Origin: Anthoceros angustus
Taxonomy: Eukaryota > Plantae > Anthocerotophyta
NCBI GenBank assembly: GCA_010909165.1
Contig: MU008151.1
Span: 372,001-436,000, forward strand
Reading direction: 5' to 3'
Length of the DNA stretch: 64,000 nt
The notes beneath the pieces are model-generated. The model ran no database searches. It was not told the DNA's origin and saw nothing but the letters and a program-made list of their open reading frames with translations. A program made the translations under genes and the position numbers. Positions 3,983 through 41,736 of the stretch are shown in pieces. The first letter of the stretch is position 1. Each line of letters begins with the position of its first letter.

Positions 3983-5540
3983 CACCTTGAAGGTACATAC
4001 CTAGTGAAGGGTACCGCGAAACCCGTTCCAAGTCGGCTTCGCAAGAGAGCCGGCCGTAGCCGGGGTGCCTTAACGACGGAACGTGCCAATTAGGAAGTAC
4101 CGACGGTATGAATAGGTTCTGTGAGAAGGACGCCATGGATTCCTGCCAAGATGCTAAGATTTACGTGATAGCCTTAGCAGATCAGGAAACGTGTGATAGG
4201 CACGTCCTTCCCTTATTGTAGTGACCAAAATATGTAAAAATGTGACGGCTTCATCGCCATCAGCAGGTTGAAGGACGTCTTACGTGAGTCCTTGCCTCAT
4301 TTTACAGACTGCTGTCACGGGACCAGACCTTTATCTTGAGCCGGAGCAGTATACGAGAAGAAATTCTGTGTCCCGAGTTGCGCAGCACACTAACTAGAAT
4401 GCTACACTGGTCTTAACCATTCCATGCTCCTCACATGCCTGGCTAGCGTAAGTAGGGTGCGGCCAGGGTCTACCATAATCAACCAACCTGTAATCCCTTC
4501 AATCAAGTGTCAGGTATCGACTTCGGCGACATACTGTTGGTGCATCAAACTGCTTCTGATAGGGTCTTCTCACTTCTCCTCGTTCTACGCATTCCTGTTT
4601 GACAAAGAGAGACGTCTCCAGCTGTTGGTTTCAAGAAGCAAGTCCAGATTGGCGGTCTTGTGGTTGAGTGATTTTTACATCGTTTGTACACCGTCAGGAT
4701 GTATTTTTCATCTTCCCGACCAGGCAAAGCTGGGACAGGGATGTCCCTCACTCAAATCGCGTCTGCAGCTCCTGCCTTCATGTCACAGTGGCAGTAGACA
4801 AAACGGAATAGCAGTTAGGCAGCAGCTAGTGCCAAAGTCCCATCTCCGATATCGAACTGAGAAGATGAAGATTCCCCTGTTGCGTGGAATGTGGACTGGA
4901 TAACGCAGCACAAACATGTGCCTGATAGGTGGTAAGTTTGTATCTCCGATGATGAAAGGACGTCAACTTAGGCAGGTGTGCAACGAGAGGGAAATTTGAA
5001 GAGTCCACTTGAATTAAATCCTGCAGAACCACTGTCTACTTCTTCTCTTAGACTCGGGGAGCAGGAACTACACCAATGCCCACATTTGCTGCTGTTCCAG
5101 CAACATTTCGCATTGACGTTGTATCATTGAACAGTTCAACGAATGACATTCGTGCCCTGCACCTTGGCAATTTACAGAACGCATACAATATGCACAGTTC
5201 CTCCGACGATCATAGCTTGTTGCAGAGAAGCCATTGAGTAATGACTAATACAAACTTGATTTGTGCATCTGTAGATTTTAGGGGTACCAACGCCTTGGGA
5301 AGAACAGCCAACCCGAGCTGGGACAAGCTGCCAAGAGATTTATCAGCTGTAGACGTGGGCTCCGGTGAGATTCTTGTCTTGATCAAGGGATCCATGGCCC
5401 AAGGCGCACGGCCTGGGCTGTGCCAGCTGTGAGGCAAGGTCGCGTAGGAGGAGGTGGCCAGACATATTTAGCCCGAAACATCAAGACATCTTTGGCCCGA
5501 AACATCAAGTGCTCCTCGGCAAATGGAATAATCTGGGAAG

Positions 5541-5680
5541 ATAGGATTTGTGTGGAGGGATTAACCCAATGATCCAAGCAAGCGTGATCCTTCTGCCCAA
5601 GTTGTGACTTATAGGATTTGTGTGGAGGGATTAACCAAATGATCCAAGCAAGCGTGATCCTTCTGCCCAAGTTGTGACTT
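5541..5680. repeat. 70-bp direct tandem duplication (2 copies)
   Basis: ataggatttgtgtggagggattaacc...gttgtgactt starts at 5541 and again at 5611. Confidence 0.95.
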
Positions 5681-6767
5681 AAAGCCAGGAGCTATATATG
5701 TTTGCTCAAGCAGAAAATATCAACCAACTCCTCTTCCTCGCATTGTGTGAGTGGAACCTGTCCTACCATTTGATTGTGGACGCTCCTCGTTACGTCCTAG
5801 CAGCGTGTGTAGTTGTCTCACCCCCACTACCTCCCGTCCACTTGCCCATGAGTTCGTTTGAAAGGAGTGGTTGGTTGATTAGTAGTCTTGTCAGCTAAAT
5901 ACATGTGTGAGCTTTAGTTGCAAGCTAGGTAGTTGTTTTCGCATCACCCCTTCCTCCTTGTGTTCCATGTGGTTGGAGAATAAGAGCGACAAAAAATAAA
6001 TAAGAGCGACGTGGTGCACTTATATCCATGATAAAGTACAGGATATGTATATACTTATATGTAGATAAACATAAGGGATATGTATATGTAGATTAAATAT
6101 ATATTATATTTATATTATTAAATATTATATTTGTATTATTAAATATAATTATAATAATAAGTTTATTTTATATTAAGATATAAATTACTTATTCATTTTA
6201 GCCATCAGCATAACTTCTAGCCCTTATCTTACCCATGCACTCTATCGTAACTTTTATCCCTTGCCCCTAACCAAGTACTCCTATACGTATTCCATAGTAT
6301 TATGTTATACTATATAATATTTTATTATTAATTACATATTATATTAAGGTATAAATTACTTATCAATAGGGCCATCGATGCCGAACGTTAAAATTTAGCT
6401 TAGCATCCATCAATACTCACTACTAGTATAGACCGAGATCAAACCCTAAACTTCTTAGTTCTAAGAAATATGCCTTGACCAATCCACTATTTTAGTTGGA
6501 GCATTAAGATCTCGGGATTTATTTGAAAGAAAAATCTAAACGTAATATTATTGCCTATGTCTAAGTTCATGGGCACGCGTCTTACTTTGCATTCGAAGGA
6601 CAGTTTCAAAAGAGAAGGAGGAAGGGACTTACCCTTTCCCTTCTCTTTTACAAGGGAGAGGAGGAGGGGGAGAGGCAAGGAGGAAAAGGGAGAGAGGGAT
6701 CTGAGGTAGAGAAAGAGGAGGAGCAAGAGGAAGCGGAAGCAGAAGTAGAGGGTGAGAGGGAAAGAAA

Positions 6768-6812: not shown

Positions 6813-7379
6813 GGGGAGAGGGAAAGGGAAAGGGAAAGGAAGAGGGTGGTCCCTCTCAAAATTTCAAAATAATTGCAACAACTAAAGTGTTACATGGTCT
6901 TTTGTTACAGTTTTGCTGGATTGGTACCGAACCTCCTTTCATCTACCTTAACCCTTGTTGCTTTCACACTCGTATTTTATTGGTGCCATTATTGTAATAT
7001 GCATATAGGGCTTTATACATACTTTACATCTACGCTTTCATTACCATATTTTCCTAAGGTAATTTATTCCAATACCTATACACGGTCTTCTACATATTTC
7101 ACTTGTATCTGTTCTACCTTATTTTCTGTTATTTTATATGTTATCCACGTATCATACAATTATATACGTCATCCGTGTAATGTACATATATACAAACCCA
7201 TTTATTCCAAAAAATATGACATATTGATATTTTATTTCACTGCACACAAGCTGGCCCATTGGATCATTCAAAATTGTGATTCCGCAAGCTCGTTCTCTGG
7301 TTCTTTTTCGTTTTTTTCATTGCGAGCACATTCCATGCTGCTCCTCTGCATCCATTTGCCAAGCATCTACACCTAATAG

Positions 7380-15861: not shown

Positions 15862-18800
15862 TGTTAGGTTTAGGGTCTCCAGTGAGACCGTGGGAGCCAT
15901 AAGCCTCCACTGCGTAAAGTCTGTAGTTGTGTTTGTTGTGTTGAGTCGGCTGTGTTTGCTTTTTGGCTAGTCCTCCCATTCGCTCGACTGATGCTTCCAA
16001 AGGTCTTGGAGACGGCGCGGCATCACGTGATGAACTTCTGTGGTAGGATTCCAGTGGTTTCTTGTGGTCCGTTGCTGCTGCGATGCCCTGTCTGTCGTTT
16101 AGTCTGCTGTGATGACCTTTATAATCCCAGCTCGCTTCGAGGTCTTTCGAGATTACTGAAGAGAATCAGATCTGAGCAGGCCCGACTCTTGGTTGCTTTC
16201 GTGCTGTTTTTCTGTATGTCCACCACATCTGCTTTGCTGCTAAGGTGTCGTTGGACGAAAGGTTGGGATGAAGACAACTTGCTGTGCCTGCGCTTGGTCG
16301 TTATGGCAAGCTTCCTATGATTACAGTTACCATGCTAATGCTGAACCTGTGATGATACTGGCCTACGGCTATGAGGAAGCTATGCACGTGTTGGGCCTTG
16401 GGTCTTAGGTTCTGTTCCAGCTTTGAAGGTAATCTTCTTGGTGTCTTTCTCATGTCTCCGTGGTTTCAAGCCGTTTGTGTCTTGATGGTTGTCCCGAGAG
16501 CTTCGGGGAATGACCTCCGTAAGTGGAGGCAGCCAGAAGTTACCCTCCCCCCTGGCGTTCCTTTGTTTGCTGCATCTGGTTGTTTGCAGCTTCTAGTCTG
16601 TTTACTGCACCCGCTTGTTAGACTCGTGGGGGGTGGTGTGCTTCGGTAAATGCCTCTCGGTCACGTTTCCTCATCGACAGCCCTGTCTCGACGCTACGGC
16701 TCCATATTCATAATGTCGTGCACTTTGTTGAGTATGATCTTTTTTTTCATTTCGGTGGAATAAAGAGCGTTAAGAAAACCTGGTTCGGTCGTGGTACCTG
16801 GGATGGAACGAGCCATCCATAGGGTTCAACTTTCGACCTCACAGCTCCGCGCGACGAGTGTACGATTCTCGAGCCGGCTTTATTTCGCGATTCTGTTCCA
16901 CTACAAAAAAGAAAGAAAAGCATATGCATGTTGCCTACGATGCATCTAGCACATGGTCTCAACTCCAATACACCGCTGTTTGAGAGACTCAGAGCAAACA
17001 TTACATACTAGTAACCCCACCGAAGTCATAATCTGGTCATTTAGATCGTTGGAACCTATGTTAAACACGTATGGGAAAGTACGGTGTTACACACGTGTGG
17101 AAGGTCACCGCGTGCAAACGTAGGTGAGTAACACGTGAGCGTTGTGTAAGAGATGCCAGGGCGCAGCCCTCCGAGCTTTCAGGCTCGTGGATTGGTCTGT
17201 TTCTAGAAGCTGCTCGTTTCTCCTCGAAGTAGCTTCTAGGAACAGATCAGGTCTGGCAAGGCTTGTCCGTCACCCCCATCTTTTGGGTGCATATCCATGT
17301 GCTAGATCCCGTGGATCTGTAAGAAATCGTGTAAAGCCCCACGGTATGTAGCACCTGTCTGTACTCGGTAACGGGTTGCACAGCTTGTTAGGTTTAGGGT
17401 CTCCAGTGAGACCGTGGGAGCCATAAGCCTCCACTGCGTAAAGTCTGTAGTTGTGTTTGTTGTGTTGAGTCGGCTGTGTTTGCTTTTTGGCTAGTCCTCC
17501 CATTCGCTCGACTGATGCTTCCAAAGGTCTTGGAGACGGCGCGGCATCACGTGATGAACTTCTGTGGTAGGATTCCAGTGGTTTCTTGTGGTCCGTTGCT
17601 GCTGCGATGCCCTGTCTGTCGTTTAGTCTGCTGTGATGACCTTTATAATCCCAGCTCGCTTCGAGGTCTTTCGAGATTACTGAAGAGAATCAGATCTGAG
17701 CAGGCCCGACTCTTGGTTGCTTTCGTGCTGTTTTTCTGTATGTCCACCACATCTGCTTTGCTGCTAAGGTGTCGTTGGACGAAAGGTTGGGATGAAGACA
17801 ACTTGCTGTGCCTGCGCTTGGTCGTTATGGCAAGCTTCCTATGATTACAGTTACCATGCTAATGCTGAACCTGTGATGATACTGGCCTACGGCTATGAGG
17901 AAGCTATGCACGTGTTGGGCCTTGGGTCTTAGGTTCTGTTCCAGCTTTGAAGGTAATCTTCTTGGTGTCTTTCTCATGTCTCCGTGGTTTCAAGCCGTTT
18001 GTGTCTTGATGGTTGTCCCGAGAGCTTCGGGGAATGACCTCCGTAAGTGGAGGCAGCCAGAAGTTACCCTCCCCCCTGGCGTTCCTTTGTTTGCTGCATC
18101 TGGTTGTTTGCAGCTTCTAGTCTGTTTACTGCACCCGCTTGTTAGACTCGTGGGGGGTGGTGTGCTTCGGTAAATGCCTCTCGGTCACGTTTCCTCATCG
18201 ACAGCCCTGTCTCGACGCTACGGCTCCATATTCATAATGTCGTGCACTTTGTTGAGTATGATCTTTTTTTTCATTTCGGTGGAATAAAGAGCGTTAAGAA
18301 AACCTGGTTCGGTCGTGGTACCTGGGATGGAACGAGCCATCCATAGGGTTCAACTTTCGACCTCACAGCTCCGCGCGACGAGTGTACGATTCTCGAGCCG
18401 GCTTTATTTCGCGATTCTGTTCCACTACAAAAAAGAAAGAAAAGCATATGCATGTTGCCTACGATGCATCTAGCACATGGTCTCAACTCCAATACACCGC
18501 TGTTTGAGAGACTCAGAGCAAACATTACATACTAGTAACCCCACCGAAGTCATAATCTGGTCATTTAGATCGTTGGAACCTATGTTAAACACGTATGGGA
18601 AAGTACGGTGTTACACACGTGTGGAAGGTCACCGCGTGCAAACGTAGGTGAGTAACACGTGAGCGTTGTGTAAGAGATGCCAGGGCGCAGCCCTCCGAGC
18701 TTTCAGGCTCGTGGATTGGTCTGTTTCTAGAAGCTGCTCGTTTCTCCTCGAAGTAGCTTCTAGGAACAGATCAGGTCTGGCAAGGCTTGTCCGTCACCCC

Positions 18801-20875: not shown

Positions 20876-23783
20876 GTTGGCAGAGACACAAGCGTGCACA
20901 TGGTGTTAGAAGCTACATACGGGTGCACAAAGAGCGGTAATAAAGCGGTTACATCATCAGCAGCATTGTCACATGAAGCAAGCAGGTAAGCCAGCCCGCA
21001 GCTAACCTTACCAACAAATCTGCCTTGTGAAAAGCCGTTCAGGGATCAGTGAAAGGGACAACAAGGACAGGGGACTCGAGGAAGTGAAATTTTAAGCACG
21101 CGGTGGCCAAGCAGCTACTGACTGTCATCCTGTAGTACATACATGCTGCAGCCCAGGCAGAGTGAGAAGACTGTGTACAAACAGCATCCCAGCCAGCGAA
21201 CCGATCCCCTGTGCTGTCCTGACTGTGATGCCATGAGGATCTACAAAAGCTCAAGAAAGGCTGTACAGGCTGCAACATAGTTTACAATAAGGGAAGGTCC
21301 AGGCAGAAGGAAGGAAGTTGCAAAAAGAGCTCACAGTGGCAGACTCTTTCAAGTTCCTTTCACCTCCTGCCGCAGGACTGGTGTGAAAAGTCAGTTACAG
21401 GACCAAAAATGCTTGCAAGCAAGGAGGTGAGGAGTTCGCAAAGTTTCCAAGAGCCAATCCAGCAGCCACAAACCTCTGGGAAATGCCTCTATGAAAACAG
21501 CAAAATCGACACACAACAGAGTCCCAATACGGTACGCAACGTTGGACGGTGTCACCCGTGGTACTCAAATGCTGCATTTGTTGCGCCAGGACAGACAGAA
21601 GCAGCTGAGAAGAAAGGAGACGAACAGACTCGTGTACTGCACCATATAATGGCTGGTAATTGGACGTATTTCCTAAGCAGGAAGAGGAATCTTGGGAGGC
21701 TGGGAGCACTAGCGTAACAAGAGTCCAGAATTGGATTGCAGGACACTGGTTTCGCACATGCGGAGTCAATGCAGGTCAGGAATCTTAAGCCAATTCGACG
21801 GGCCCTGAAACTAGGCACTGCACTGCACTGCACTGCACTGAGAGAGCAGAATGAGAGAGCTAGCAAAGCATGCGTAGCGAGCGGGTCCCCCATTGCAACG
21901 GATTAAACAGACTGAGTGGCGGCCGTTCGCAGCAAAATTTTGCAACCGGGACGCGGCACGGCACGTCAAGATCTCGTCCGCTGGCTTGCCACAGATTTTT
22001 GTGTCACATGGCCACCTCCCAGCGACAAATTTCGGACGCGTACCTGCATTGCGTGCGTCATCTGGCCGAGCGGGGCACGCCGCTGCTGATGCAGATGCTG
22101 ACGCAAAGGTCAAGTCGCTACGCTGCTGCCGCCAATGGAGCTCCACGCCTGCGCCAATCCCACCCGCAGCCTCATCGCCGCAACCACGTGGTGCCTGACA
22201 TCGCCGGACCGCCTCCTCGCTCCTCGCCGCGGCGCCGGCCGCTGATTCTCGCCTACGCGCTTCATGGTAACCGATCTACATGCTTCTCCGATTGCCGCAT
22301 TCCCGCCTGCCGCGAACTCGGAGCGCAGGGTTGGCAGAGACACAAGCGTGCACATGGTGTTAGAAGCTACATACGGGTGCACAAAGAGCGGTAATAAAGC
22401 GGTTACATCATCAGCAGCATTGTCACATGAAGCAAGCAGGTAAGCCAGCCCGCAGCTAACCTTACCAACAAATCTGCCTTGTGAAAAGCCGTTCAGGGAT
22501 CAGTGAAAGGGACAACAAGGACAGGGGACTCGAGGAAGTGAAATTTTAAGCACGCGGTGGCCAAGCAGCTACTGACTGTCATCCTGTAGTACATACATGC
22601 TGCAGCCCAGGCAGAGTGAGAAGACTGTGTACAAACAGCATCCCAGCCAGCGAACCGATCCCCTGTGCTGTCCTGACTGTGATGCCATGAGGATCTACAA
22701 AAGCTCAAGAAAGGCTGTACAGGCTGCAACATAGTTTACAATAAGGGAAGGTCCAGGCAGAAGGAAGGAAGTTGCAAAAAGAGCTCACAGTGGCAGACTC
22801 TTTCAAGTTCCTTTCACCTCCTGCCGCAGGACTGGTGTGAAAAGTCAGTTACAGGACCAAAAATGCTTGCAAGCAAGGAGGTGAGGAGTTCGCAAAGTTT
22901 CCAAGAGCCAATCCAGCAGCCACAAACCTCTGGGAAATGCCTCTATGAAAACAGCAAAATCGACACACAACAGAGTCCCAATACGGTACGCAACGTTGGA
23001 CGGTGTCACCCGTGGTACTCAAATGCTGCATTTGTTGCGCCAGGACAGACAGAAGCAGCTGAGAAGAAAGGAGACGAACAGACTCGTGTACTGCACCATA
23101 TAATGGCTGGTAATTGGACGTATTTCCTAAGCAGGAAGAGGAATCTTGGGAGGCTGGGAGCACTAGCGTAACAAGAGTCCAGAATTGGATTGCAGGACAC
23201 TGGTTTCGCACATGCGGAGTCAATGCAGGTCAGGAATCTTAAGCCAATTCGACGGGCCCTGAAACTAGGCACTGCACTGCACTGCACTGCACTGAGAGAG
23301 CAGAATGAGAGAGCTAGCAAAGCATGCGTAGCGAGCGGGTCCCCCATTGCAACGGATTAAACAGACTGAGTGGCGGCCGTTCGCAGCAAAATTTTGCAAC
23401 CGGGACGCGGCACGGCACGTCAAGATCTCGTCCGCTGGCTTGCCACAGATTTTTGTGTCACATGGCCACCTCCCAGCGACAAATTTCGGACGCGTACCTG
23501 CATTGCGTGCGTCATCTGGCCGAGCGGGGCACGCCGCTGCTGATGCAGATGCTGACGCAAAGGTCAAGTCGCTACGCTGCTGCCGCCAATGGAGCTCCAC
23601 GCCTGCGCCAATCCCACCCGCAGCCTCATCGCCGCAACCACGTGGTGCCTGACATCGCCGGACCGCCTCCTCGCTCCTCGCCGCGGCGCCGGCCGCTGAT
23701 TCTCGCCTACGCGCTTCATGGTAACCGATCTACATGCTTCTCCGATTGCCGCATTCCCGCCTGCCGCGAACTCGGAGCGCAGG
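20876..23783. repeat. 1454-bp direct tandem duplication (20876-22329, 22330-23783) of the bHLH 5' region
   Basis: gttggcagagacacaagcg starts at 20876 and at 22330. ORF-track translations repeat with an offset of 1454. Confidence 0.97.
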
Positions 23784-25616: not shown

Positions 25617-27150
25617 TCAAGGACTCCAGTCCCCGAACTCGTCCACAAACATGTCGTCCACCATGAACATCTCATCAAATACATCACCATCTGAGTCCAG
25701 CTGCGACGCCATGCACCATTCCTCCAAGTCACTGAGCCAGATCTCGTCATAGCGATCATCGTAGCTTTCCCAAGGATCGTCCGCATCATCATCATCATCC
25801 AGATCATCCTCGTCATATACATCGCGATGGGTCTTGAAGAACCAGGTCTTGAGCTTCTTCACCTTCGCTTGTAGTTCCTCGTCCATGATCAGCTTGCCGC
25901 AATTGCGCACATCCAGGTACTGCAAGTCCTTGCAGGACTCCAGTATTGCCATCAATCCAATGTTCGAGAATTGTCCATATTTCAGCTCAAGGTGCTGCAG
26001 CTTGGACATGTTCTGTGCGATTGCAAGTGCCTCACTCTCGGGCAAAGATGACACCTGACTTCCCCGCATGCGCCTCCTCAGATCAACCAAATTGGCAGCC
26101 TTCTTGCCGATGTTCTCGAGCGCCACCTCCGACAGCACCTGACAGTGACTGATGTTCAGTTGCATGAGAGCTGGGAACTTGACTTCCTCGCCAAAGAAAC
26201 AGCAATCCGAAATGGGACTGTTCGGAATGAAGAGCTTCCTCAGATGTGCGCATCTGCACAGACGAACCACGCAAGTCATGACCAGAAGGCAAGATCCATC
26301 CCTACTCTGCCAGAAAGAGGCATCGCACATGCAATACCTCGGTTCTTAACCGCAGAATGCAACATGCAGACATATTTTTACCTTTGCCATCACAAGGCAA
26401 GCAATCCGAAACGGCTAACACAGATTTAACCAGAAAAGATCGGAGACCGAGCAAGGCCGAACATCCGAGCCTAATTAGGCTTACGACACACACAAGACTC
26501 GAAAGCGGACAGACAGCGCGTGAAAGAAGACCTTGTCGCAACATATCGAATGGAGTCGTCAGACCCGACGTTTGTGACGATGAGCTCCTGAAGACCGCCG
26601 CAGCTCCGATCAACCACCAGCCTCACCATGCGATCCACAGCACTCGTCTTATCCTTGTCCGTCTTGCTCCATTCCCTCTTACTCCACTCCTTCTTACTCC
26701 AGCTGGAAAGGTCCACGACCTAATGACGCCATGAAGCAAGGTGAAACGAGGGCAGGACTGCCAGACACAGGCCGGGAATCGCAGATCCCGCATTCCAAGA
26801 AAGTCATGCCAAGAATGACGAATCACCTGCCAGCACGAGGGATCCAGAGCAGCTCTCCTCCAAGACTTGCACACCAGTGGCACCACATTCATGAGCTCCT
26901 CGAACGACAGTCTGCTGAAGATGGCTGCCAGAGCTTCCGGCAGCATGTCTGCCCAGGCGCCGAAATCTTGAATCGGGGCTTCCTCATGCTTCCCATCGTC
27001 CGACGATCTTGCAGATCCCGACTCCGCTCCGTGTGAAGGGTCATCCGAATTTCTGTCTGTTCCGCTTCCCACAGGCGGCACCAGCTGCTCACCAGCCATG
27101 CCATCGGCCATGTCAGGCCACCAAACCCTCCTCGAGGCTCTCTCGGCCAT
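25617..27150 (-). CDS. F-box/LRR protein of FBW2/SKIP1/SKIP19 type with an acidic tail
   Basis: F-box WADMLPEALAAIFSRLSFEELMNVVPLVCKSWRRAALDPSCWQ, then VDRMVRLVVDRSCGGLQEL, LRR-like segments ALAIAQNMSKLQHLEL and GLMAILESCKDLQYLDVRNC, and a D/E-rich C-terminus. The start may alternatively be at 27111. Confidence 0.9.
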
Positions 27151-27429
27151 GAGCCACCGGCATAACTGCTTTAACACACAGCAACCCCGCAAGGTGACCG
27201 CACCATGCAGTATTGTACAGTGTCATTGTTACGCCCACCCAATTTAGGTCTGTATTGTATTGTTACCGTAGGAGGCTACGGTTTTGGGCGCCCCTTTGCC
27301 GAATCGTTTAGTTTTCTAAACGATGAAATTTCAACACCTAAAATATCTTCCATAATTTCAACAAGGTATTGTATCTTTCTTTAATTCGGCACTTTATAAA
27401 TAGTATTATTGTAAACACATCACTCTTAG

Positions 27430-27989
27430 ATGCCAGCTCCTGGTCTGCTCCTCTTCATATGCATCCTCCAATGCCAGCTCAGATTCCCTGGTCTGCTGCT
27501 CTTCATATGCATCCTCCAATGCTAGCTCAAACTCCCTGGTTTGCTGCTCTTCATGTGCATCCTCTGATGCTAGCTCAGACTCCCTGGTCTGCCACTCTTC
27601 GTATGCATCTAGAGGCAATGTTAGTATATATAGACTCCTCGGTCTACTACTCATTTCTTGCATCCTCCGATGTGGGTACGGACTCCGTGGCTTGCCATTC
27701 TTCTCATGTCTTTCTCACAAGGTTGTCTCTTGCTAACAATTTTGATGTGGCTTCTTCCCATGTGATATCATCTTACACTATAAGGAAATTGGTGAAGGCA
27801 CACCAAGATGCGAGTAAGGAACGGTACAAAAACAGCTTTTGTATTCCGTCTACCATTGCGTACTTCTTGTCAGATGCCTCCAGTGCAATAAACAACTCAT
27901 GTAAAGGTATTGATGTGCTCTCTCAATTCCTCCCTACTTGTATACTTCAACACCTGGATTCGGGTGAATAAGTGCAGCACTTCCCCTCT
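27430..27989 (-). mobile_element. Ty1/Copia gag, C-terminal half (degenerate), followed by a 48-bp coding minisatellite
   Basis: Across frameshifts the minus strand reads EVLHLFTRIQVLKYTSREELREHINTF.ELFIALEAS...LYRSLLASWCAFTNFL...DITWEEATSKLLARD, resembling UBN2-type Copia gag. About four 48-bp units encode LEDAYEEQQTRESELA. Confidence 0.75.
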
Positions 27990-28090
27990 AACAAGGTCTC
28001 CTTAGGGCTAGTGACACACTCCACTTTCAGGAGACGGGCCAGGGGCTAGAAGAGATCCCAAAGTTCATAGAGAAGGTCAAGGACAGTGCT

Positions 28091-31020
28091 GTGGCCACGG
28101 ATGACGATAGGCTAGCGATGACGAGGGCTGAGGCTGGGCGAGATGTTGCGAGAGAGGCAATTGCGGGAAAGAGAGTATGGGAGTCCACGTTAAAGCTGTC
28201 CATCAACAGTTGTAGACCTCCAGAACAACTTTGTCAGTTTGGCAAGGTACGTAAGCTAGACCTGGCTTGGGTGGAGGCTTTGATGCAAAAGATGAAGCAT
28301 TCCACGTGGGTGGCCGGTGTGCTGCCCATGATTGTCATTGTAGACCCGGCCCAGTGTCCCAACAAGAACTTCTTTGACATGGATAAGGTGGATCGGGGGG
28401 TGTACAAATTTTATGTATTGGAGGGAATCATTCCTTCCAGGCCAGATCTAGACTAGCCGACTTGTATCCATTGGTTCAAATGCAGGTGGATGGATGCATA
28501 TGTTCTTCTTGGCCTCACAAATGAGGAGATGAGGTTAGTTGCCGATCACAACACCATTGCGGATGCCGGAAGACTTTTACTTTCATCGACCGTGTGAGGT
28601 ACATCAGGCGAGATGAAGGCCGGGCTAGGCGATGGGTGAAGTGTGACTTAGACTGAAGTTGGAGATATATGCCGGTGGCGGGGTTCCTAAGTGGGATGCG
28701 ACCAAGCATGGACCTAAGGTCTATCACGCCTCGTGGACAACCTAGGACCTTTGGATTATTGTGTTGCGAAGGTTGATGATGAGGTGTGGAAATGCGTGGA
28801 TGAAATCTTTGAGAAGTGGAGGCAAGCAGTTGCTGGCGGTGGAAGCTCGGGCTCTCACAAAGCAGTCGAGGCCGCGAATTCAAGGAAGACAACAGTTAGA
28901 GCAAACTTGGTCATTGACACAAAGGAGCTTAGTATACCGGTGAGGGTATGGAAGTGTTTCGGGGCATCGAGCGATCTGCGGTGGGAACAACAACTTGAAG
29001 ACAACATGCATGAAAGTCCTGGAGAATTGACATTGAAACAAATGTTCGTGTGGGTGGACAAGGCCAAAAACTCAACCTCATCCATGTGACATCGCCAAGC
29101 ATTTGCACGTGAGACATTTGAAGAGGTTCGAAGCGATATCCCGATTCGCATGGTGAATCAAATTAGTAACTTCCACGCCTTCAAAAATCTGGGTCCTCGA
29201 TGAACACTTAGCTATACCCAAATCGAGTTTCTCTCTTGTCTTCTTGTCCTTATAAGTCATGGAAAGTGGAGGCATTCACACCGTACATTCGAAGAGAACG
29301 TCCTTGCATTTGGTGGGATGTGTCTTTCATGTCTGCGTGCCAACACTTGCCTTGAGTGGGGTGCCCTACGAGAACTTCAAGGAGCACATATTCAAGGCCG
29401 AGCTTGGAAGCGGATGGAGGAGTCGCGTGCCTTGAAATCGACCACACGAGGATAAGCGATGACAATCGTGAGCGACTCCAAGCCGGAAAAACCCGGCAAG
29501 GTCGGGATCGTGGAACATAGTGAACATGGCCCGGTTTGTAGAGCCCGACCGTATGCTTTGTTGTTGTTAGACCTCCCGAGGCTTGGATCTAGATCCCCAA
29601 TCACGAGTATGACACAAGATTTACCAAGGCGAGTTTGAAGGGGTCATCATGCGGTTCAAAGGCATCACCACATCCGGTATTTCGTATTGTGGTCTTCCAT
29701 TCTCCGGATGACACATCTATGGTGAGAGAAGTCTTGATGGAAGCGTGCGGTCTTTGGCGACATGTTCGGCATAAAACCAATGTGACATTGTCGAGGACAG
29801 TGCGATCGAGGACTTTTCACTTGCGCGAGCTTGGAAGCGGATGGAGGAGTCGCAACGTGCCTTGAAATCGACCACACGAGGATAAGTGATGACAATCGTG
29901 AGCGACTCCAAGCCGGAAAAACCCGGCAAGGTCGGGATCGTGGAACATAGTGAACATGGCCCGGTTTGTAGAGCCCGACCGTATGCTTTGTTGTTGTTAG
30001 ACCTCCCGAGGCTTGGATCTAGATCCCCAATCACGAGTATGACACAAGATTTACCAAGGCGAGTTTGAAGGGGTCATCATGCGGTTCAAAGGCATCACCA
30101 CATCCGGTATTTCGTATTGTGGTCTTCCATTCTCCGGATGACACATCTATGGTGAGAGAAGTCTTGATGGAAGCGTGCGGTCTTTGGCGACATGTTCGGC
30201 ATAAAACCAATGTGACATTGTCGAGGACAATGCGATCGAGGACTTTTCACTTGCGCAGGAGCTTGGAAGCGGATGGAGGAGTCGCAACGTGCCTTGAAAT
30301 CGACCACACGAGGATAAGCGATGACAATCGTGAGCGACTCCAAGCCGGAAAAACCCGGCAAGGTCGGGATCGTGGAACATAGTGAACATGGCCCGGTTTG
30401 TAGAGCCCGACCGTATGCTTTGTTGTTGTTAGACCTCCCGAGGCTTGGATCTAGATCCCCAATCACGAGTATGACACAAGATTTACCAAGGCGAGTTTGA
30501 AGGGTCATCATGCGGTTCAAAGGCATCACCACATCCGGTATTTCGTATTGTGGTCTTCCATTCTCCGGATGACACATCTATGGTGAGAGAAGTCTTGATG
30601 GAAGCGTGCGGTCTTTGGCGACATGTTCGGCATAAAACCAATGTGACATTGTCGAGGACAATGCGATGGGACTTTTCACTTGCGCAGGAGCTTGGATAAG
30701 GATTGTGTGCCTCAACCGTTTGTGCTCGAGAACCGACGCAACTTGGCGGTGGAGTGACAACTTTGTTTGCGAGCGGCGGTGGAACTAAAATTGTGTTACA
30801 ACACCGCGGATGATCGGGTTGTTTCCCCTATCGAAGCCCCTAAGACTCTTGAAGAGGTTGATTGTATATCTGAGGGAGATTGGGTCTTTGCCGGTGCGAT
30901 CGGGATCGGGTATGATAGCATTGTTGATTATGCCGTAATGTCATTTGATGTGGATCCCAGTGCGCTCAATTCATGGACCTTGAATCAATTCCATGGACGG
31001 TGGCCGACGGAAGAGGAGGA
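28091..31020 (+). pseudogene. ParB/sulfiredoxin-like domain fused to a beta-class N4C/N6A DNA methyltransferase (PF01555-like), frameshifted and internally triplicated
   Basis: ParB-like part: KVRKLDLAWVEALMQKMK...PMIVIVD...YVLEG(NH)SFQAR (28421) and LGLTNEEMRLVA.HN..FTFIDRVRYIR. MTase part: PYALLLLDLP/GL (29570, the DPPY position, interrupted by a frameshift), IVVFHS, HKTN, KPLRLLKRLI (30834), GDWVF (30875), GSG (30903), SFDVDP. Confidence 0.72.
29400..30695. repeat. Three tandem copies of an approximately 430-bp unit, differing by small indels
   Basis: gagcttggaagcggatggaggagtcgc starts at 29400, 29827 and 30259; a partial gagcttgga occurs at 30688. Confidence 0.93.
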
Positions 31021-32656
31021 GGTGGGCGAGGAGCTATGGAGGCGGAAAGGCGTTCAATAAGGAGCCCATGGTGAACAACATGGTGGTGCCGGGGTTCATA
31101 TGTGTCGTTGAAGCGAGACCAACGAGGAAGCCGAGACCAAGGGTCATATGGCATGTGGTGAAGCAGCAGCGACAACTCAATGGTCCTTGGGGATGCGGGC
31201 GGCAAGTGAAGGAGGCGAAGAGCACCCTCCTCGGGTGTGCTTGGCGGCCGGATGGTGGGGATGTAGGATTGGAAAACTTTGCTTCACGGATCGAGGTGTG
31301 TCGTGCGGACGGTGGATAGGCTACGTGTTTGTTTCGAGGATTACGGTAGGAGGACCGGTGTGGTCTTAAGCGGTAGGTGGTATCTGCACTGGTAGAACGT
31401 GCATGCAAGGCTATGAACACAACAAACACATCGGCAAGGTCCCCGGAGACCTAGACAACGAACACGGTCTTTGGTGGAGCACGCAAGCTAGGAAGCATGG
31501 GAGTGGTGGCGATTCGAGAATGTGTTCGGTGATTGTGCCGGGTATTTGATGAGCGAGATCATGGGCGTCTGTCGCATCGGCAAGGTATGGATTTCCACGA
31601 AACAACGGACCGATTTCAAAGAAGCGCGTCGTCCATTCATACAGCGGATCAATACAATCGCCAAAGCTGTTCCTAATCTCGCTAGGAAGACTATGTATGT
31701 TGTAAACCCACGAGATAAAGCGACGGTGTCGAAGATGACAATGGATGTCATGTGACAATCCAACTTGAAACACGATGTTCAACTTTCACAGATAGCACTG
31801 CTCGCTTATGCCGTAATGTCATTTGATGTGGATCCCAGTGCGCTCAATTCATGGACCTTCGAATCAATTCCATGGACACCGACGGAAGAGGAGGAGGTGG
31901 GCGAGGAGCCCGCTATGGAGGCGGAAAGACGCTCAATAAGGAGCCCATGGTGAACAACATGGTGCCCGGTTCATATGTGTCGTTGAAGCGAGACCAACGA
32001 GGAAGCCCGAGACCAAGGGTCATATGGCATGGTGAAGCAACCGCAGCGACAACTCAATGGTCCTTGGGGATGCGGGCGGCAAGTGAAGGAGGCGAAGAGC
32101 ACCCTCCTCGGGTGTGCTTGATGATGGTGGGGATGTAGGATTGGAAAACTTTGCTTCAGATCGAGGTGTGTCGTGGATATGGATAGGCTACGTGTTTGTT
32201 TCGAGGATTACGGTAGGAGGAACCGGTGTGGTCTTAAGCACCGGACATGGTAGCCGCACTGGTAGAACGTGCATGCAAGGCTATGAACACAACAAACACA
32301 TCGGCAAGGTCCCCGGAGCGACTCTAGACAACGAACACGGTCTTTGGTGGAGCACGCAAGCTAGGAAGCATGGGAGTGGTGGCGATTCGGAGAATGTGTT
32401 CGGTGATTGTGCCGGGTATTTGATGAGCGAGATCATGGGCGTCTGTGCACAATCGCAAGGTATGGATTTCACGAAACAACGGACCGATTTCAAAGAAGCG
32501 CGTGGTGCCGGGTATTTGATGAGCGAGATCAATACAATCGCCAAATCGTTTCCTAATCTCTCGCTAGGAAGACTATGTTGTAAACCCACGAGATAAAACA
32601 ATGTAAGATGACAATGGATGTCATGTGACAATCCAACTTGAAACACGATGTTCAAT
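30929..32656. repeat. Two tandem copies of an approximately 870-bp unit with many 1-3-bp indels
   Basis: tatgccgtaatgtcatttgatgtggatccc starts at 30929 and 31807; both copies end in gaaacacgatgttcaa. Confidence 0.92.
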
Positions 32657-33470
32657 CGCTTTCATAGCCGCACTAACACCGCCTCGGTACACACATGTAG
32701 CAATATGACTTTCTCCAATTTTATCCTTGACCACGGTAAGTACACTGGACATGTCGGTGCTCCTTTGCCCTCCACACCATTCACCGCTCCAACCCCAGTG
32801 GTGGAATCCGGTGTTGATCAACACGTTACGATGTCGCGAGTTTGCCGCCTCAACCGAAATTCCTTAAGGACCAAGCAATGAAGCGGGCGGGATCACTCCA
32901 GCGTGCTTGAAAGGAACTGCCCATGTTGTGATTGCCACCGGTGCGTCAACTTCCAATTTCCATCGCCCATGTGGAATTCTCGTTTGATGGTCGGTACAGG
33001 TGAGGTCTCCATCGCATGCAAATATTCGGCGTGGCAAGCCACTTCCAAACGATTCGCAGGGGTCGCGGCTCGGTGTCTGGAACATGAGCGGTAGGCGTCC
33101 GAAATCTTCCTCCACTCCGCGACATTGGGCGGGAGATGCAAGGTTTATGCAGGCGTCCGGTGCCACCACGACCCTCCCACTAATGTAGAGGGTGACCATG
33201 ACGGTGGACACCAACTCAACACATGTGGACTTTCCATTGCGCGTTTGCATTTTGTTGTCCATACACGATTTCAAATCTGCGTTTATAGGCAATGTACCCC
33301 GCTGGTTAGCCAAACTAATATGAGATGAGAACATACAAATACGGTAAAACAGATCCCTCTATGATTTGCTCCTATGTTCAGGGGGGTTTTTTTTTTAATG
33401 AAATCAGGAAAACATGGTTTTGGATGGCTTTTGTATACCTTTCGATCCTGTGTACACCCTTCCAACTAGT
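31000..33470 (-). pseudogene. Possible CACTA/EnSpm Tnp2-like transposase remnant (heavily frameshifted)
   Basis: Minus-strand fragments occur in the order expected for Tnp2: FPDF (about 33410), L.LA..GV, VMVTLY..LPP, EFRLR, KGAPTCPV (about 32760), KVI.YMC.RR, LFR.IPY, H.L.H, and an FPP..HLL..GP-like string (about 31020). Each match is short. Confidence 0.45.
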
Positions 33471-33507
33471 GACCAGGAGCCGTCACCAGTCCCAAGGAGA
33501 CCTTGTT

Positions 33508-33860
33508 CTCTTTCCTTTAGCCATACTTCGTCTTGAGCAGCTTCTACACCTTTTCCATCCCTTGATCTGGTTCTACGATAGCCAGCTTGATAGCCTTGGA
33601 GAGACTCATGTATATGAGAGCCGTTGCACAATGGTCTCTCTGATCTAATCTCTCCCCTTTGTCACATTGCGTGGGTTTCTTCTTCGTGCCTTCCGCAATA
33701 GCAAACCCGCCCTCTACCATTAGAACGACCTTCATGGACGTTCTGCATAATAGAAATCCTGTTCTATCGAACGTCGACACTTGAAGTGCCGCTGTGGATA
33801 TTAATGAGCTTAGTGCCATCCCAACTAGCTCCTGGTACTCCGACACCAACTTCATCTCTT
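33508..33860 (-). mobile_element. Ty1/Copia gag, N-terminal half
   Basis: TFDRTGFLLCRTSMKVVLMVEGGFAIAEGTKKKP...DQRDHCATALIYMSLSKAIKLAIVE...LLKTKYG fits the Copia gag N-terminal pattern. Confidence 0.8.
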
Positions 33861-39827: not shown

Positions 39828-41736
39828 TTAATAATCAATAGTGCCTTGAATAATTTTGTAATCTCTTCCCAGAATTCCAAGTACAACTTGAGCTGCTGCA
39901 CTTTCGGCATTTTTCTTGCATGTTTGTGGGGTACCTATACGTATGATAGTTTCAATGACCTCACTCGTACTTGAATTCGTGATTGAGACCTTTACCCTGC
40001 ATGTGAATCTGTACAATAATATTATTGTGAGCATAGGTTTCAAGTTGCAGCTTCTCATAATAAATATGTAGGTAATATCTCACCTTATCTCATGAAACGG
40101 TCCTTCTACATTCTCTATGGAGTATATTGGTAAGTGCCAATGTCTTCGCAAACAGATTTCATTGAGCTGTGACTTGTATTGAGAAAAAGAAACGTCATGT
40201 ATTGTTTTCTTATATGTCGTATGGTCTACAAAAGTAAAAATATTGTTAAGATAAGGATTCAAATTTTGAATATAATAAAGATTGATGTATAAGAATGCTT
40301 ACTTAGCTTGTTTTGTAGACCTTCCATCAAATCTATAGCGTTGCGCTGTACCTGGATCAATTAAAGACACATTCTTTACCAACTTTTTTTGTTGTAAACT
40401 TGATCGTGGATTTAATTCAGAGTAGTCCAAAACTTGATTGTGGATTAAATTCAGAATAGTCCAAAACTTGATTGTGGATTTAATTCAAAGTAGTCCTAAA
40501 CTTGATTGTGGATTTAATTCAGAGCAGTCCAAAACTTGATTGTGGATTTAATTCAGAGCAGTCCAAAACTTGATTGTGGATTTAATTCAGAGTAGTCCAC
40601 TAGGACTTTTTACAACAGACGGCTCCGTAGCGTATTTTTTTTTATAACAGGGGACTCCGTAGGGCTTTTTTTACAAGAGGGGATGGTCCCAACAGTGAAC
40701 TAACTCAAAGTTGCTTGACCGTGGAGTTTGAATGGACCCACGTTTATGTGTTCCTCTTGAAGATAGGACTTCATCAATTTTCAAGTTTTCATAGTATGAA
40801 TCTTAATTTTAAATAAGGCTTTTATTTTGGTGCAACCATTATTCTTTTTCGTATTATGACATGAAGTAAAAAAGGACATAGGATTCTTACCAATAAAGGA
40901 GGAGCTAATAACACATCCAGAGTGAGTATCGGCGATAGAAGTGGTTTTATAATTTCCCACGTTTTTTGAAAATCATCCTCTGTATCAAGAAAAATTGCAG
41001 CAATTATACTTTCGACAACATCTGCCAAAACCTGCTTAAGAGATCAGATTTAAATAAGTTATTTATTTGGCCTTATAAAAACCTCATATTATACATACAT
41101 ACATCTAAAATGCATAAACCACAAAGAAAATTCAATAATAAAAACAATAAAGTACCTTTGGACATTTCTCTTTTTCATCAAGACCTTCATGAACGATTTT
41201 AGTGTAGCTCATGATATGAGCATGAATTTTTTTTTCTTTGTGTTGTATGTAGCGGCTGAAATTATGCTTGACTGCAATTTTTGCCAGTGACTCGTTGTTT
41301 GCCATAGCTGCCCTCATACGGGTCATGTCCCCTTGTGAAGCATTTGGATAAGTAGCATAGAAGTGTCTAGTTAACATGGCATAAAGCAAGCTGTCCCCTA
41401 GATGTTCTAGCCGCTGTAAAAACATTCAATCTAGTTAACACGGTATAAAGCAAGCTGGCCCCAAGATGTTCTAGTTGCTGAAAAAACATTCAATCACAAG
41501 ACATGATTCGAGGAAGAAGGGAAATCAAGTGTAACTTTATTAGTACGTCGCAGTAAAAAGTTAAAAAATAAATAAAACTCCATCCCGATAGCTTATACCT
41601 CGTAAGATTTGCCTTGCTTATGCGACTTGTGAGTTATTGCCTCTAACAAAATACTTTTATCCCGAAAAACATAGCCTAATATTTGCTCGAGTGCATGGAT
41701 GGCTTGGCTTGGTGAGAGAGTTACGGATTCTTCCAT
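39828..41736 (-). CDS. RNASE THREE-LIKE (RTL) protein: one RNase III domain plus one dsRBD, 6 exons, apparently intact
   Basis: MEESV...LEQILGYVFRDKSILLEAITHKSH...SYE|RLEHLGDSLL...RAAMANNESLAKIAVKH...KCPK|VLADVVESIIAAIFLD...|VQRNAIDL..|YKSQLNEICLRRHWHLPIY...GPFHEI|RFTCRV...KKNAESAAAQVVL. All five GT-AG introns are phase-consistent, and the catalytic E/D and D/E residues are present. Confidence 0.9.
40396..40599. repeat. 34-bp minisatellite, 6 copies, in RTL intron 3
   Basis: aaacttgattgtggatttaattcagagtagtcca repeated six times with few substitutions. Confidence 0.95.

Follow-up and report, generated by a model that had tools for sequence, protein, structure and literature searches.

A probable fossil DNA transposon with a decayed ParB-like/methylase-like cargo gene in the land plant Anthoceros angustus

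In a 64,000-nucleotide stretch of the Anthoceros angustus genome (contig MU008151.1, positions 372,001 to 436,000 of the forward strand; hereafter the window), we delineated a 5,518-bp element at 27990–33507 that has 26-nt terminal inverted repeats (TIRs) and is flanked by a 4-bp target-site duplication (TSD), CTCT. With a probability that we put at roughly 85%, this locus is a fossil copy of a TIR cut-and-paste DNA transposon, non-autonomous and derived by deletion, which inserted into a Copia gag sequence and carries a decayed ParB-like/methylase-like cargo gene. An original prediction had read the gene as a mobile fusion of a ParB/Srx-like domain to an N4C/N6A DNA methyltransferase. The feature is real, and that first reading was right in outline but over-read in detail.

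Results

The left TIR (27990–28015, + strand), which begins AACAAGGTCTCC, is 88% complementary to the right TIR (33482–33507, − strand) with which it pairs, and the element termini read AACAAGG. One copy of CTCT lies at 27986–27989 and the other at 33508–33511. The 17-nt tip of the TIR is found at just these two sites in the 64-kb window, where the chance expectation is 0. When the element and one CTCT were removed in silico, a minus-strand reading of a Copia-type gag ran across the junction; this decayed gag, the host of the insertion, occupies 33512–33855 (−) and resumes at 27985 and below, and its flank gives a weak match to PF14223 (E 0.0017). The TIRs and TSD bear out the proposal that the gene resides on a mobile element.

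Translation of the + strand in three frames between 28000 and 31200, which was used to locate the motif blocks, revealed that the only recognisable gene in the element is a 5′-truncated pseudogene, interrupted by two in-frame stops and no fewer than ten frame changes, its blocks scattered across all three reading frames. A probable ParB/Srx-like N-terminal domain, truncated at its 5′ end, spans 28049–28653 (+), with the blocks VEAL../PMIV at 28270–28340 and GNHS at 28426–28437, and with frame changes near 28424, 28475–28484 and 28567–28570. The helical linker that follows (28656–29254, +) has two further frame changes and contains the in-frame stops, at 29087–29089 and 29201–29203.

Downstream of the linker, the N-half of a methylase-like region is present as a tandem triplication of a 430-bp unit (29399–30696, +; 98–99% identity), which accounts for the three local copies described earlier. 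Each unit contains D-L-P-R, FHSPDD and HKTN and about five frame changes. The D-L-P-R sites, one per unit, lie at 29570–29581, 30000–30011 and 30432–30443 (+), the first of them ending the block LLLLDLPR (29558–29581), which recurs at the other two; FHSPDD and HKTN were placed at 29695–29712 and 29770–29781 (+). The C-half (30773–31003, +) holds motifs X (KPLRLLKRLI, 30834–30863), I (EGDWVF..SGSG, with EGDWVF at 30872–30889 and SGSG at 30900–30911) and II (SFDVD, within SFDVDP at 30941–30958); in this region two frames alternate four times within about 100 nt. A tail motif, GGGKAFNKEPMVNN, which is conserved with the relative L002 introduced below, lies at 31035–31079 (+) and appears again at 31900–31990 in a duplicate. 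The blocks quoted in the original prediction are thus all present on the + strand and collinear with relatives, but they do not share one frame, and ‘LEGNH’ spans a frameshift.

Homology to the relatives starts 34 nt past the left TIR. Because this point is inside the gene, with the intact relative P0007 extending about 150 residues further upstream, the 5′ part of the gene and anything before it have been lost here. This copy cannot make a protein; it had already been judged inactive, and the frame changes, the two stops, the 5′ truncation and the internal duplications uphold that judgement.

Relatives were found through the first N-terminal piece, with which a phmmer search of the whole library returned P0001 (intact, 237 aa; E 4.7e-23, 43% identity) and P0002. 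The window N-domain is 43% identical to both intact relatives, P0001 and P0007. Whole-library phmmer gave three true relatives (P0001, P0002 and P0005), all of them fragments; P0003 was dismissed as an FN3 false positive. P0002 sits on a 16-kb Logan contig, L002, and positions 28049–31079 of the window are collinear with 4046–6268 of that contig (tblastx, tblastn) at approximately 45–50% identity. In tblastn searches of the 64-kb window, the N-domain was matched by P0001 with an E of 4.8e-40, and the linker, methylase N-half and methylase C-half were matched by L002 with E values of 6e-16, 3.7e-11 and 2e-5, respectively. These alignments show that the motif blocks are genuinely homologous and did not arise by chance.

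L002 has the 430-bp unit once and lacks the window’s internal duplications. Its right terminus is the same as that of the window element (6880–6915, ..CAAGGAGACCTTGTT) and lies about 300 bp past the gene. Since an in-frame stop at 5959–5961 replaces a Leu codon of the window (VELK*CYSTAG vs VELKLCYNTAD) and the GGNH segment is missing from its N-domain, L002, the best relative found, is also a pseudogene. Upstream of its ParB-methylase gene, on the opposite strand, are two Cys-rich open reading frames (ORFs) with the stretches ‘FCCGRQC’ and ‘CQDCENIK’ (L002 251–1666, −); they have no Pfam match and may be the N-terminal part of a transposase of the element that extends beyond the contig. L002 (2743–3297, +) and the contig L008 (779–1501, +) also share an ORF that precedes the ParB-like gene on the same strand (tblastn E 6.9e-15, 25% identity). 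The truncated window copy lacks this ORF, which may be a third gene of the element or one of its upstream exons.

The contigs of the closest relatives are eukaryote-style, with an ORF that is RecQ-like by eye and a gene for a ULP1 protease (Pfam Peptidase_C48). Homologue searches with the L002 methylase N-half and P0001, under a length filter that left out full-length proteins, returned just the query and P0007. The corresponding search with a phage ParB-methylase yielded only sequences at least 96% identical, which offered no diversity for a profile, and two metagenome scans with family alignments gave no matches.

The methylase ancestry of the gene is clearest in the C-half of L002. The segment at 5986–6192 (KPVRLLKKLI..EGDWVLDDGSGPGS..AIEIE) scores 34.8 bits on PF01555, above the gathering score of 26.7, the match covering profile positions 163–212 of 221 only. 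For the same segment, five PHROGs of phage DNA methyltransferases were matched, tblastn gave matches in 393 phage records, and a hidden Markov model (HMM) built from eight phage beta-class methylases gave 50.8 bits (E 1.7e-14); weak matches to solved (PDB) N4C and N6A methylases were also obtained. Where motif I (F-x-G-x-G) and the acidic residue of motif II were sought, L002 reads VLDDGSGPGS and then ..AIEIE, and its S-adenosylmethionine (SAM)-binding motifs look preserved at the sequence level; in the window, SGSG and SFDVD are split by frameshifts. The proposed beta-class arrangement, with motif IV first, agrees with what we found: the permuted order of IV, target recognition domain, X, I and II is the same in the window and L002 and aligns with the phage enzymes, the blocks running DLPR, FHSPDD, W/H-K-T-N, KP.RLLK.LI, EGDWV..GSG and (F/I)(D/E)(V/I)(D/E).

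Motif IV was sought as (D/S/N)-P-P-(Y/F/W), and in its place L002 reads D-L-P-R, as does the window in all three units. When L002 was aligned with three phage enzymes in MAFFT, its LCMLDLPRG fell opposite VITDPPFG, IITDPPYG and VIADIPYN; compared with DPPY, Leu replaces the first Pro and Arg replaces the aromatic residue. Since the L002 methylase N-half is not significant against either Pfam or the phage HMM, the equation of DLPR with motif IV rests on alignment order and position. It had been proposed that a catalytic Tyr codon was disrupted in all three local copies. This proposal failed, as the residue that follows D-L-P in the window is Arg whether it is read in frame or after a one-base slip, and is Arg in L002 as well. 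Because the lineage reads D-L-P-R, canonical amino-methyltransferase catalysis is doubtful, even for intact relatives.

The sole recurring palindrome in the element, GGATCTAGATCC (perfect, 12 nt), occurs once per 430-bp unit, at 29585–29596, 30015–30026 and 30447–30458. It is the coding sequence of GLDLDP directly after motif IV and not a separate array of sites; neither parS-like palindrome arrays nor subterminal repeats were found within the element.

The ParB/Srx label that was originally given to the N-terminal domain could not be confirmed with Pfam, NCBIfam, PDB profile searches, hhalign or structure prediction. The intact relatives P0001 and P0007 have no match in Pfam or NCBIfam, ParB included, and a family profile found none among PDB sequences. 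Comparison by hhalign with P0009, a phage protein that combines ParB_N and N6_N4_Mtase, gave a probability of 1.6%, at a very low depth of the N-domain alignment (effective number of sequences, Neff, 1.6), and tblastn of the N-domain against 50,697 phage records produced no match. Two AlphaFold models, calculated from alignments of 8 and 9 rows that were mostly fragments, reached predicted local distance difference test (pLDDT) values of 51.7 and 51.8. Because pLDDT was about 52, the Foldseek results on these models are meaningless.

Other features of the domain point towards such a fold. The family motif (V/I)(L/F)GGNHS(L/F/W)QAR.RL, with a helix after a hydrophobic strand, has Ser where Arg is expected (G-x-x-R / GG-x-H-R); the GGNHS-type motif of the window is split by a frameshift. 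Language-model features of P0001 (residues 55–237) were closest to unnamed eukaryotic clusters (0.97), ParB_N clusters (0.92) and DUF6551 (0.90), and a model of the top eukaryotic cluster superposes on ParB_N models with a template modelling (TM) score of 0.53–0.57. P0001 alone gave this lead, feature searches with the window piece and the L002 N-half being uninformative. Similar transposon proteins have been called ParB-like in the literature (PMC12477816). On balance, we lean towards a ParB/Srx fold for this domain, a prediction from family sequences.

The abundance of the element was assessed in X1, a DNA run from the same organism. X1 contigs over parts of the element have a word depth of 100–380, compared with about 4 on the Copia flank, and carry 101 indel variants over the element; because word depth is not a copy number, this is taken as a multi-copy signal only, and it suggests that the transposon family is multi-copy. 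Depth was 4–39 over 27900–28281, where the left terminus and the 300 nt next to it lie, and 270–380 over the ParB core (28282–28663) and the right terminus (33248–33507). The drop at the left end fits a left junction that is peculiar to a small deletion subfamily.

In the right part of the element, an 877-bp tandem duplication covers the 3′ end of the gene (30914–31791 and 31791–32667, +; 89.7% identical), and the internal sequence beyond it (32668–33481) contains a 156-aa ORF (32864–33334, −) and has no family match. Rfam searches gave no match, and the G+C content of the element is the same as that of its flanks. Family searches of ORFs recovered no recognisable transposase in 31200–33481 or in the rest of the 64-kb window and, because none was identified, the superfamily of the element is not established. 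Bao et al. are said to have described in 2009 that Sola elements generate 4-bp TSDs. The combination of TIRs and a 4-bp TSD, which is a feature of Sola1, is present here as the 26-nt TIRs and CTCT; this TSD is compatible with the Sola superfamily but does not prove membership.

Several features were recorded in the surroundings of the element. Its left flank contains a 48-bp tandem repeat (27439–27609; 3.6 copies, 88% matching), and a host gene with an F-box (PF12937, E 3.6e-9) and leucine-rich repeats (LRR), two-exon-like in structure, lies at 25617–27192 (−), directly left of the Copia remnant. Elsewhere in the window, direct repeats of 300 nt or more form two pairs, each 100% identical, at 15862–17685 and 20876–22629 with spacings of 1524 and 1454 nt, and a 34-bp tandem array lies at 40361–40632 in AT-rich surroundings (~35% G+C).

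Discussion

We propose the following history for the locus. Full-length relatives would carry an accessory gene that encodes a probable ParB/Srx-like N-domain, a helical linker and a permuted beta-class (PF01555-type) amino-methyltransferase-like domain, together with a putative transposase on the opposite strand. A deletion would have brought the left TIR up against the accessory gene at about codon 150, with loss of the promoter, the start codon and the upstream part, and what remained of the gene would later have acquired its frame changes (at least ten), two stops and two internal tandem duplications. The resulting copy would encode nothing and could be mobilised only in trans. In intact members, we infer, the N-terminal domain may tether the protein to DNA, perhaps to the element’s own DNA, where the SAM-binding domain could methylate an exocyclic amino group, forming N6-methyladenine (6mA) or N4-methylcytosine (4mC), or act non-canonically. 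The last option is considered because the lineage has D-x-P-R instead of DPPY. Self-marking of the element and an effect on host silencing, both raised in the original prediction, are likewise hypothetical.

A number of results weigh against this reading. A transposase was identified nowhere. No stop-free piece of the window reaches any Pfam threshold, and PHROGs and NCBIfam were also without a match; even when it was joined by hand with X at the breaks, the window C-half scored 9.7 bits against the phage beta-methylase HMM. As just the L002 C-half passes PF01555, the assignment of the window gene to the methylases is by descent and not by its own score, and the PF01555-type identity originally suggested holds for the C-half of the relative but is not matched by any piece of the window itself. 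The lack of significance of the L002 methylase N-half, noted above, belongs here too, and none of the profile or fold tests applied bore out a likeness to ParB. Finally, all X1 depth at 28441–28444 and 29543 departs from the window sequence, and some lesions may accordingly be assembly errors or peculiar to this copy; X1 itself may derive from the sample that was assembled.

This last group of observations bears on the idea that the gene is really intact and encodes a working ParB-methyltransferase, its frame changes being assembly indel errors or short introns. Several of the changes do fall in short homopolymer or dinucleotide runs, such as a missing C in the CCCC before the Arg codon and a missing GA after 29604, and X1 contigs show alternative indel states at or near some sites in addition to the two in full disagreement. 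We nevertheless consider an intact gene very unlikely. Frame changes occur 0–10 nt apart inside conserved blocks, a spacing that leaves no space for introns; moreover, there are two in-frame stops, a 5′ truncation without a start codon and two tandem duplications that break the domain. At 29604, 449/600 of the X1 word depth has the frameshifted state of the window and 151/600 has an extra GA that would rejoin two frames. Given this majority, the lesion at 29604 is real and common to many copies. An RNA run, X2, gave no contigs on the locus.

If the motifs had instead been over-read from three frames of ordinary transposon sequence, with no methyltransferase ancestry, the absence of Pfam matches in the window, the low score of its hand-picked read-through and the missing canonical DPPY would all be expected. 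That account is highly improbable, in view of the block-by-block collinearity of the window with L002, whose orthologous segment exceeds the PF01555 gathering threshold and has matches in 393 phage records. A CACTA/EnSpm-type element, in which 31000–33470 would hold a transposase remnant convergent to the methylase gene, is in our view equally improbable: the termini read AACAAGG and not CACTA, the TSD is 4 bp and not 3 bp, the sequence at 30914–32667 is a tandem duplication of the methylase gene’s own 3′ end, and no ORF in 31000–33470 matches any family. Bacterial or phage contamination, or an assembly chimera, which the otherwise prokaryotic or phage-borne nature of this methylase type might bring to mind, has a negligible chance of being correct, given TIRs and a perfect TSD within a plant Copia gag beside an F-box/LRR gene, a G+C content that agrees with the flanks, a multi-copy signal from the same organism’s DNA, nearest relatives on contigs with ULP1 protease and RecQ-like sequences, and an N-terminal domain without any phage match.

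Taken as a decayed transposon copy, the locus is of little weight in itself, being a dead, truncated fossil that is unable to mark DNA. The family is of moderate interest, since transposons with their own DNA-modifying enzyme other than for 5-methylcytosine (5mC) are published from algae only in the literature searched. The sharpest point is the replacement of the catalytic DPPY by D-x-P-R in two diverged copies, which makes it a trait of the family and not of the locus; because of it, claims that these elements write 4mC or 6mA call for caution. Tentatively, and with the odds against it, we raise the possibility that a land-plant transposon lineage keeps a deviant D-x-P-R loop for DPPY yet retains its SAM-binding motifs. 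The family would then be something other than a plain writer of 6mA or 4mC; it could comprise DNA-tethered methyltransferases with a new catalytic geometry or substrate or, alternatively, a SAM-sensing pseudoenzyme carried on transposons from charophytes to seed plants.

Similar transposon cargo genes are already known from algae, and the combination itself is not new; published accounts of such elements in land plants were not found in the literature searched. Sola1-1_Ec32 of Ectocarpus is a 21.5-kb TIR transposon with a ParB-like plus N4C/N6A methyltransferase cargo gene, opposite in strand to the transposase, and its authors, who for green and red algae refer to Iyer et al. 2011 and to the Bostrychia genome paper, suggest that the protein binds and modifies its own element (Genome Biol 2025, PMC12477816). 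By description, the present family resembles it in having the cargo gene on a TIR DNA transposon, in the 4-bp TSD that fits Sola, and in the opposite-strand ORFs upstream of the gene in L002. It differs in that Sola1-1_Ec32 is 21.5 kb long and encodes a 1104-aa protein, whereas the element described here is 5.5 kb, has no transposase, resides in a land plant and carries a pseudogene with DLPR.

ParB-linked methylase clades have been described in chlorophytes, chytrids and haptophytes (Iyer et al. 2016, PMC4738411). For PAG2 and PAG3, accessory genes of Plavaka (EnSpm) elements in the red alga Bostrychia, self-binding through inverted-repeat arrays has been proposed (bioRxiv 10.1101/2025.02.11.637652). 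In these elements a 2OG oxygenase is the fusion partner of the ParB-like domain, and a separate protein with a SET domain contains the N6A methylase; the window copy differs further in its lack of palindrome arrays.

Outside eukaryotes, phage fusions of ParB_N and N6_N4_Mtase, exemplified by gp34 of Streptococcus phage Javan112 (P0009; ParB_N 28.1 bits and N6_N4_Mtase 106.4 bits in Pfam), have the same order of a ParB-type N-domain followed by a permuted beta-class methylase, and in their C-terminal motifs X, I and II the homology to the plant family is clear. They differ in length (~411 aa, without the 250-aa linker) and in the presence of DPPY, and their ParB_N passes Pfam whereas the plant family’s N-domain does not. 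Finally, MpDN4MT1a/b of Marchantia and N4CMT of bdelloids are likewise PF01555-type or prokaryote-like amino-methyltransferases recruited by eukaryotes. Marchantia DN4MT1 has the canonical TSPPY motif (bioRxiv 10.1101/2021.02.12.428880), and bdelloid N4CMT carries a chromodomain and was described as an N6_N4 methylase without eukaryotic homologues (PMC8885841); neither of these two papers mentions ParB. In contrast to the transposon-borne family described here, MpDN4MT1a/b and N4CMT are host genes, and their activity is proven.

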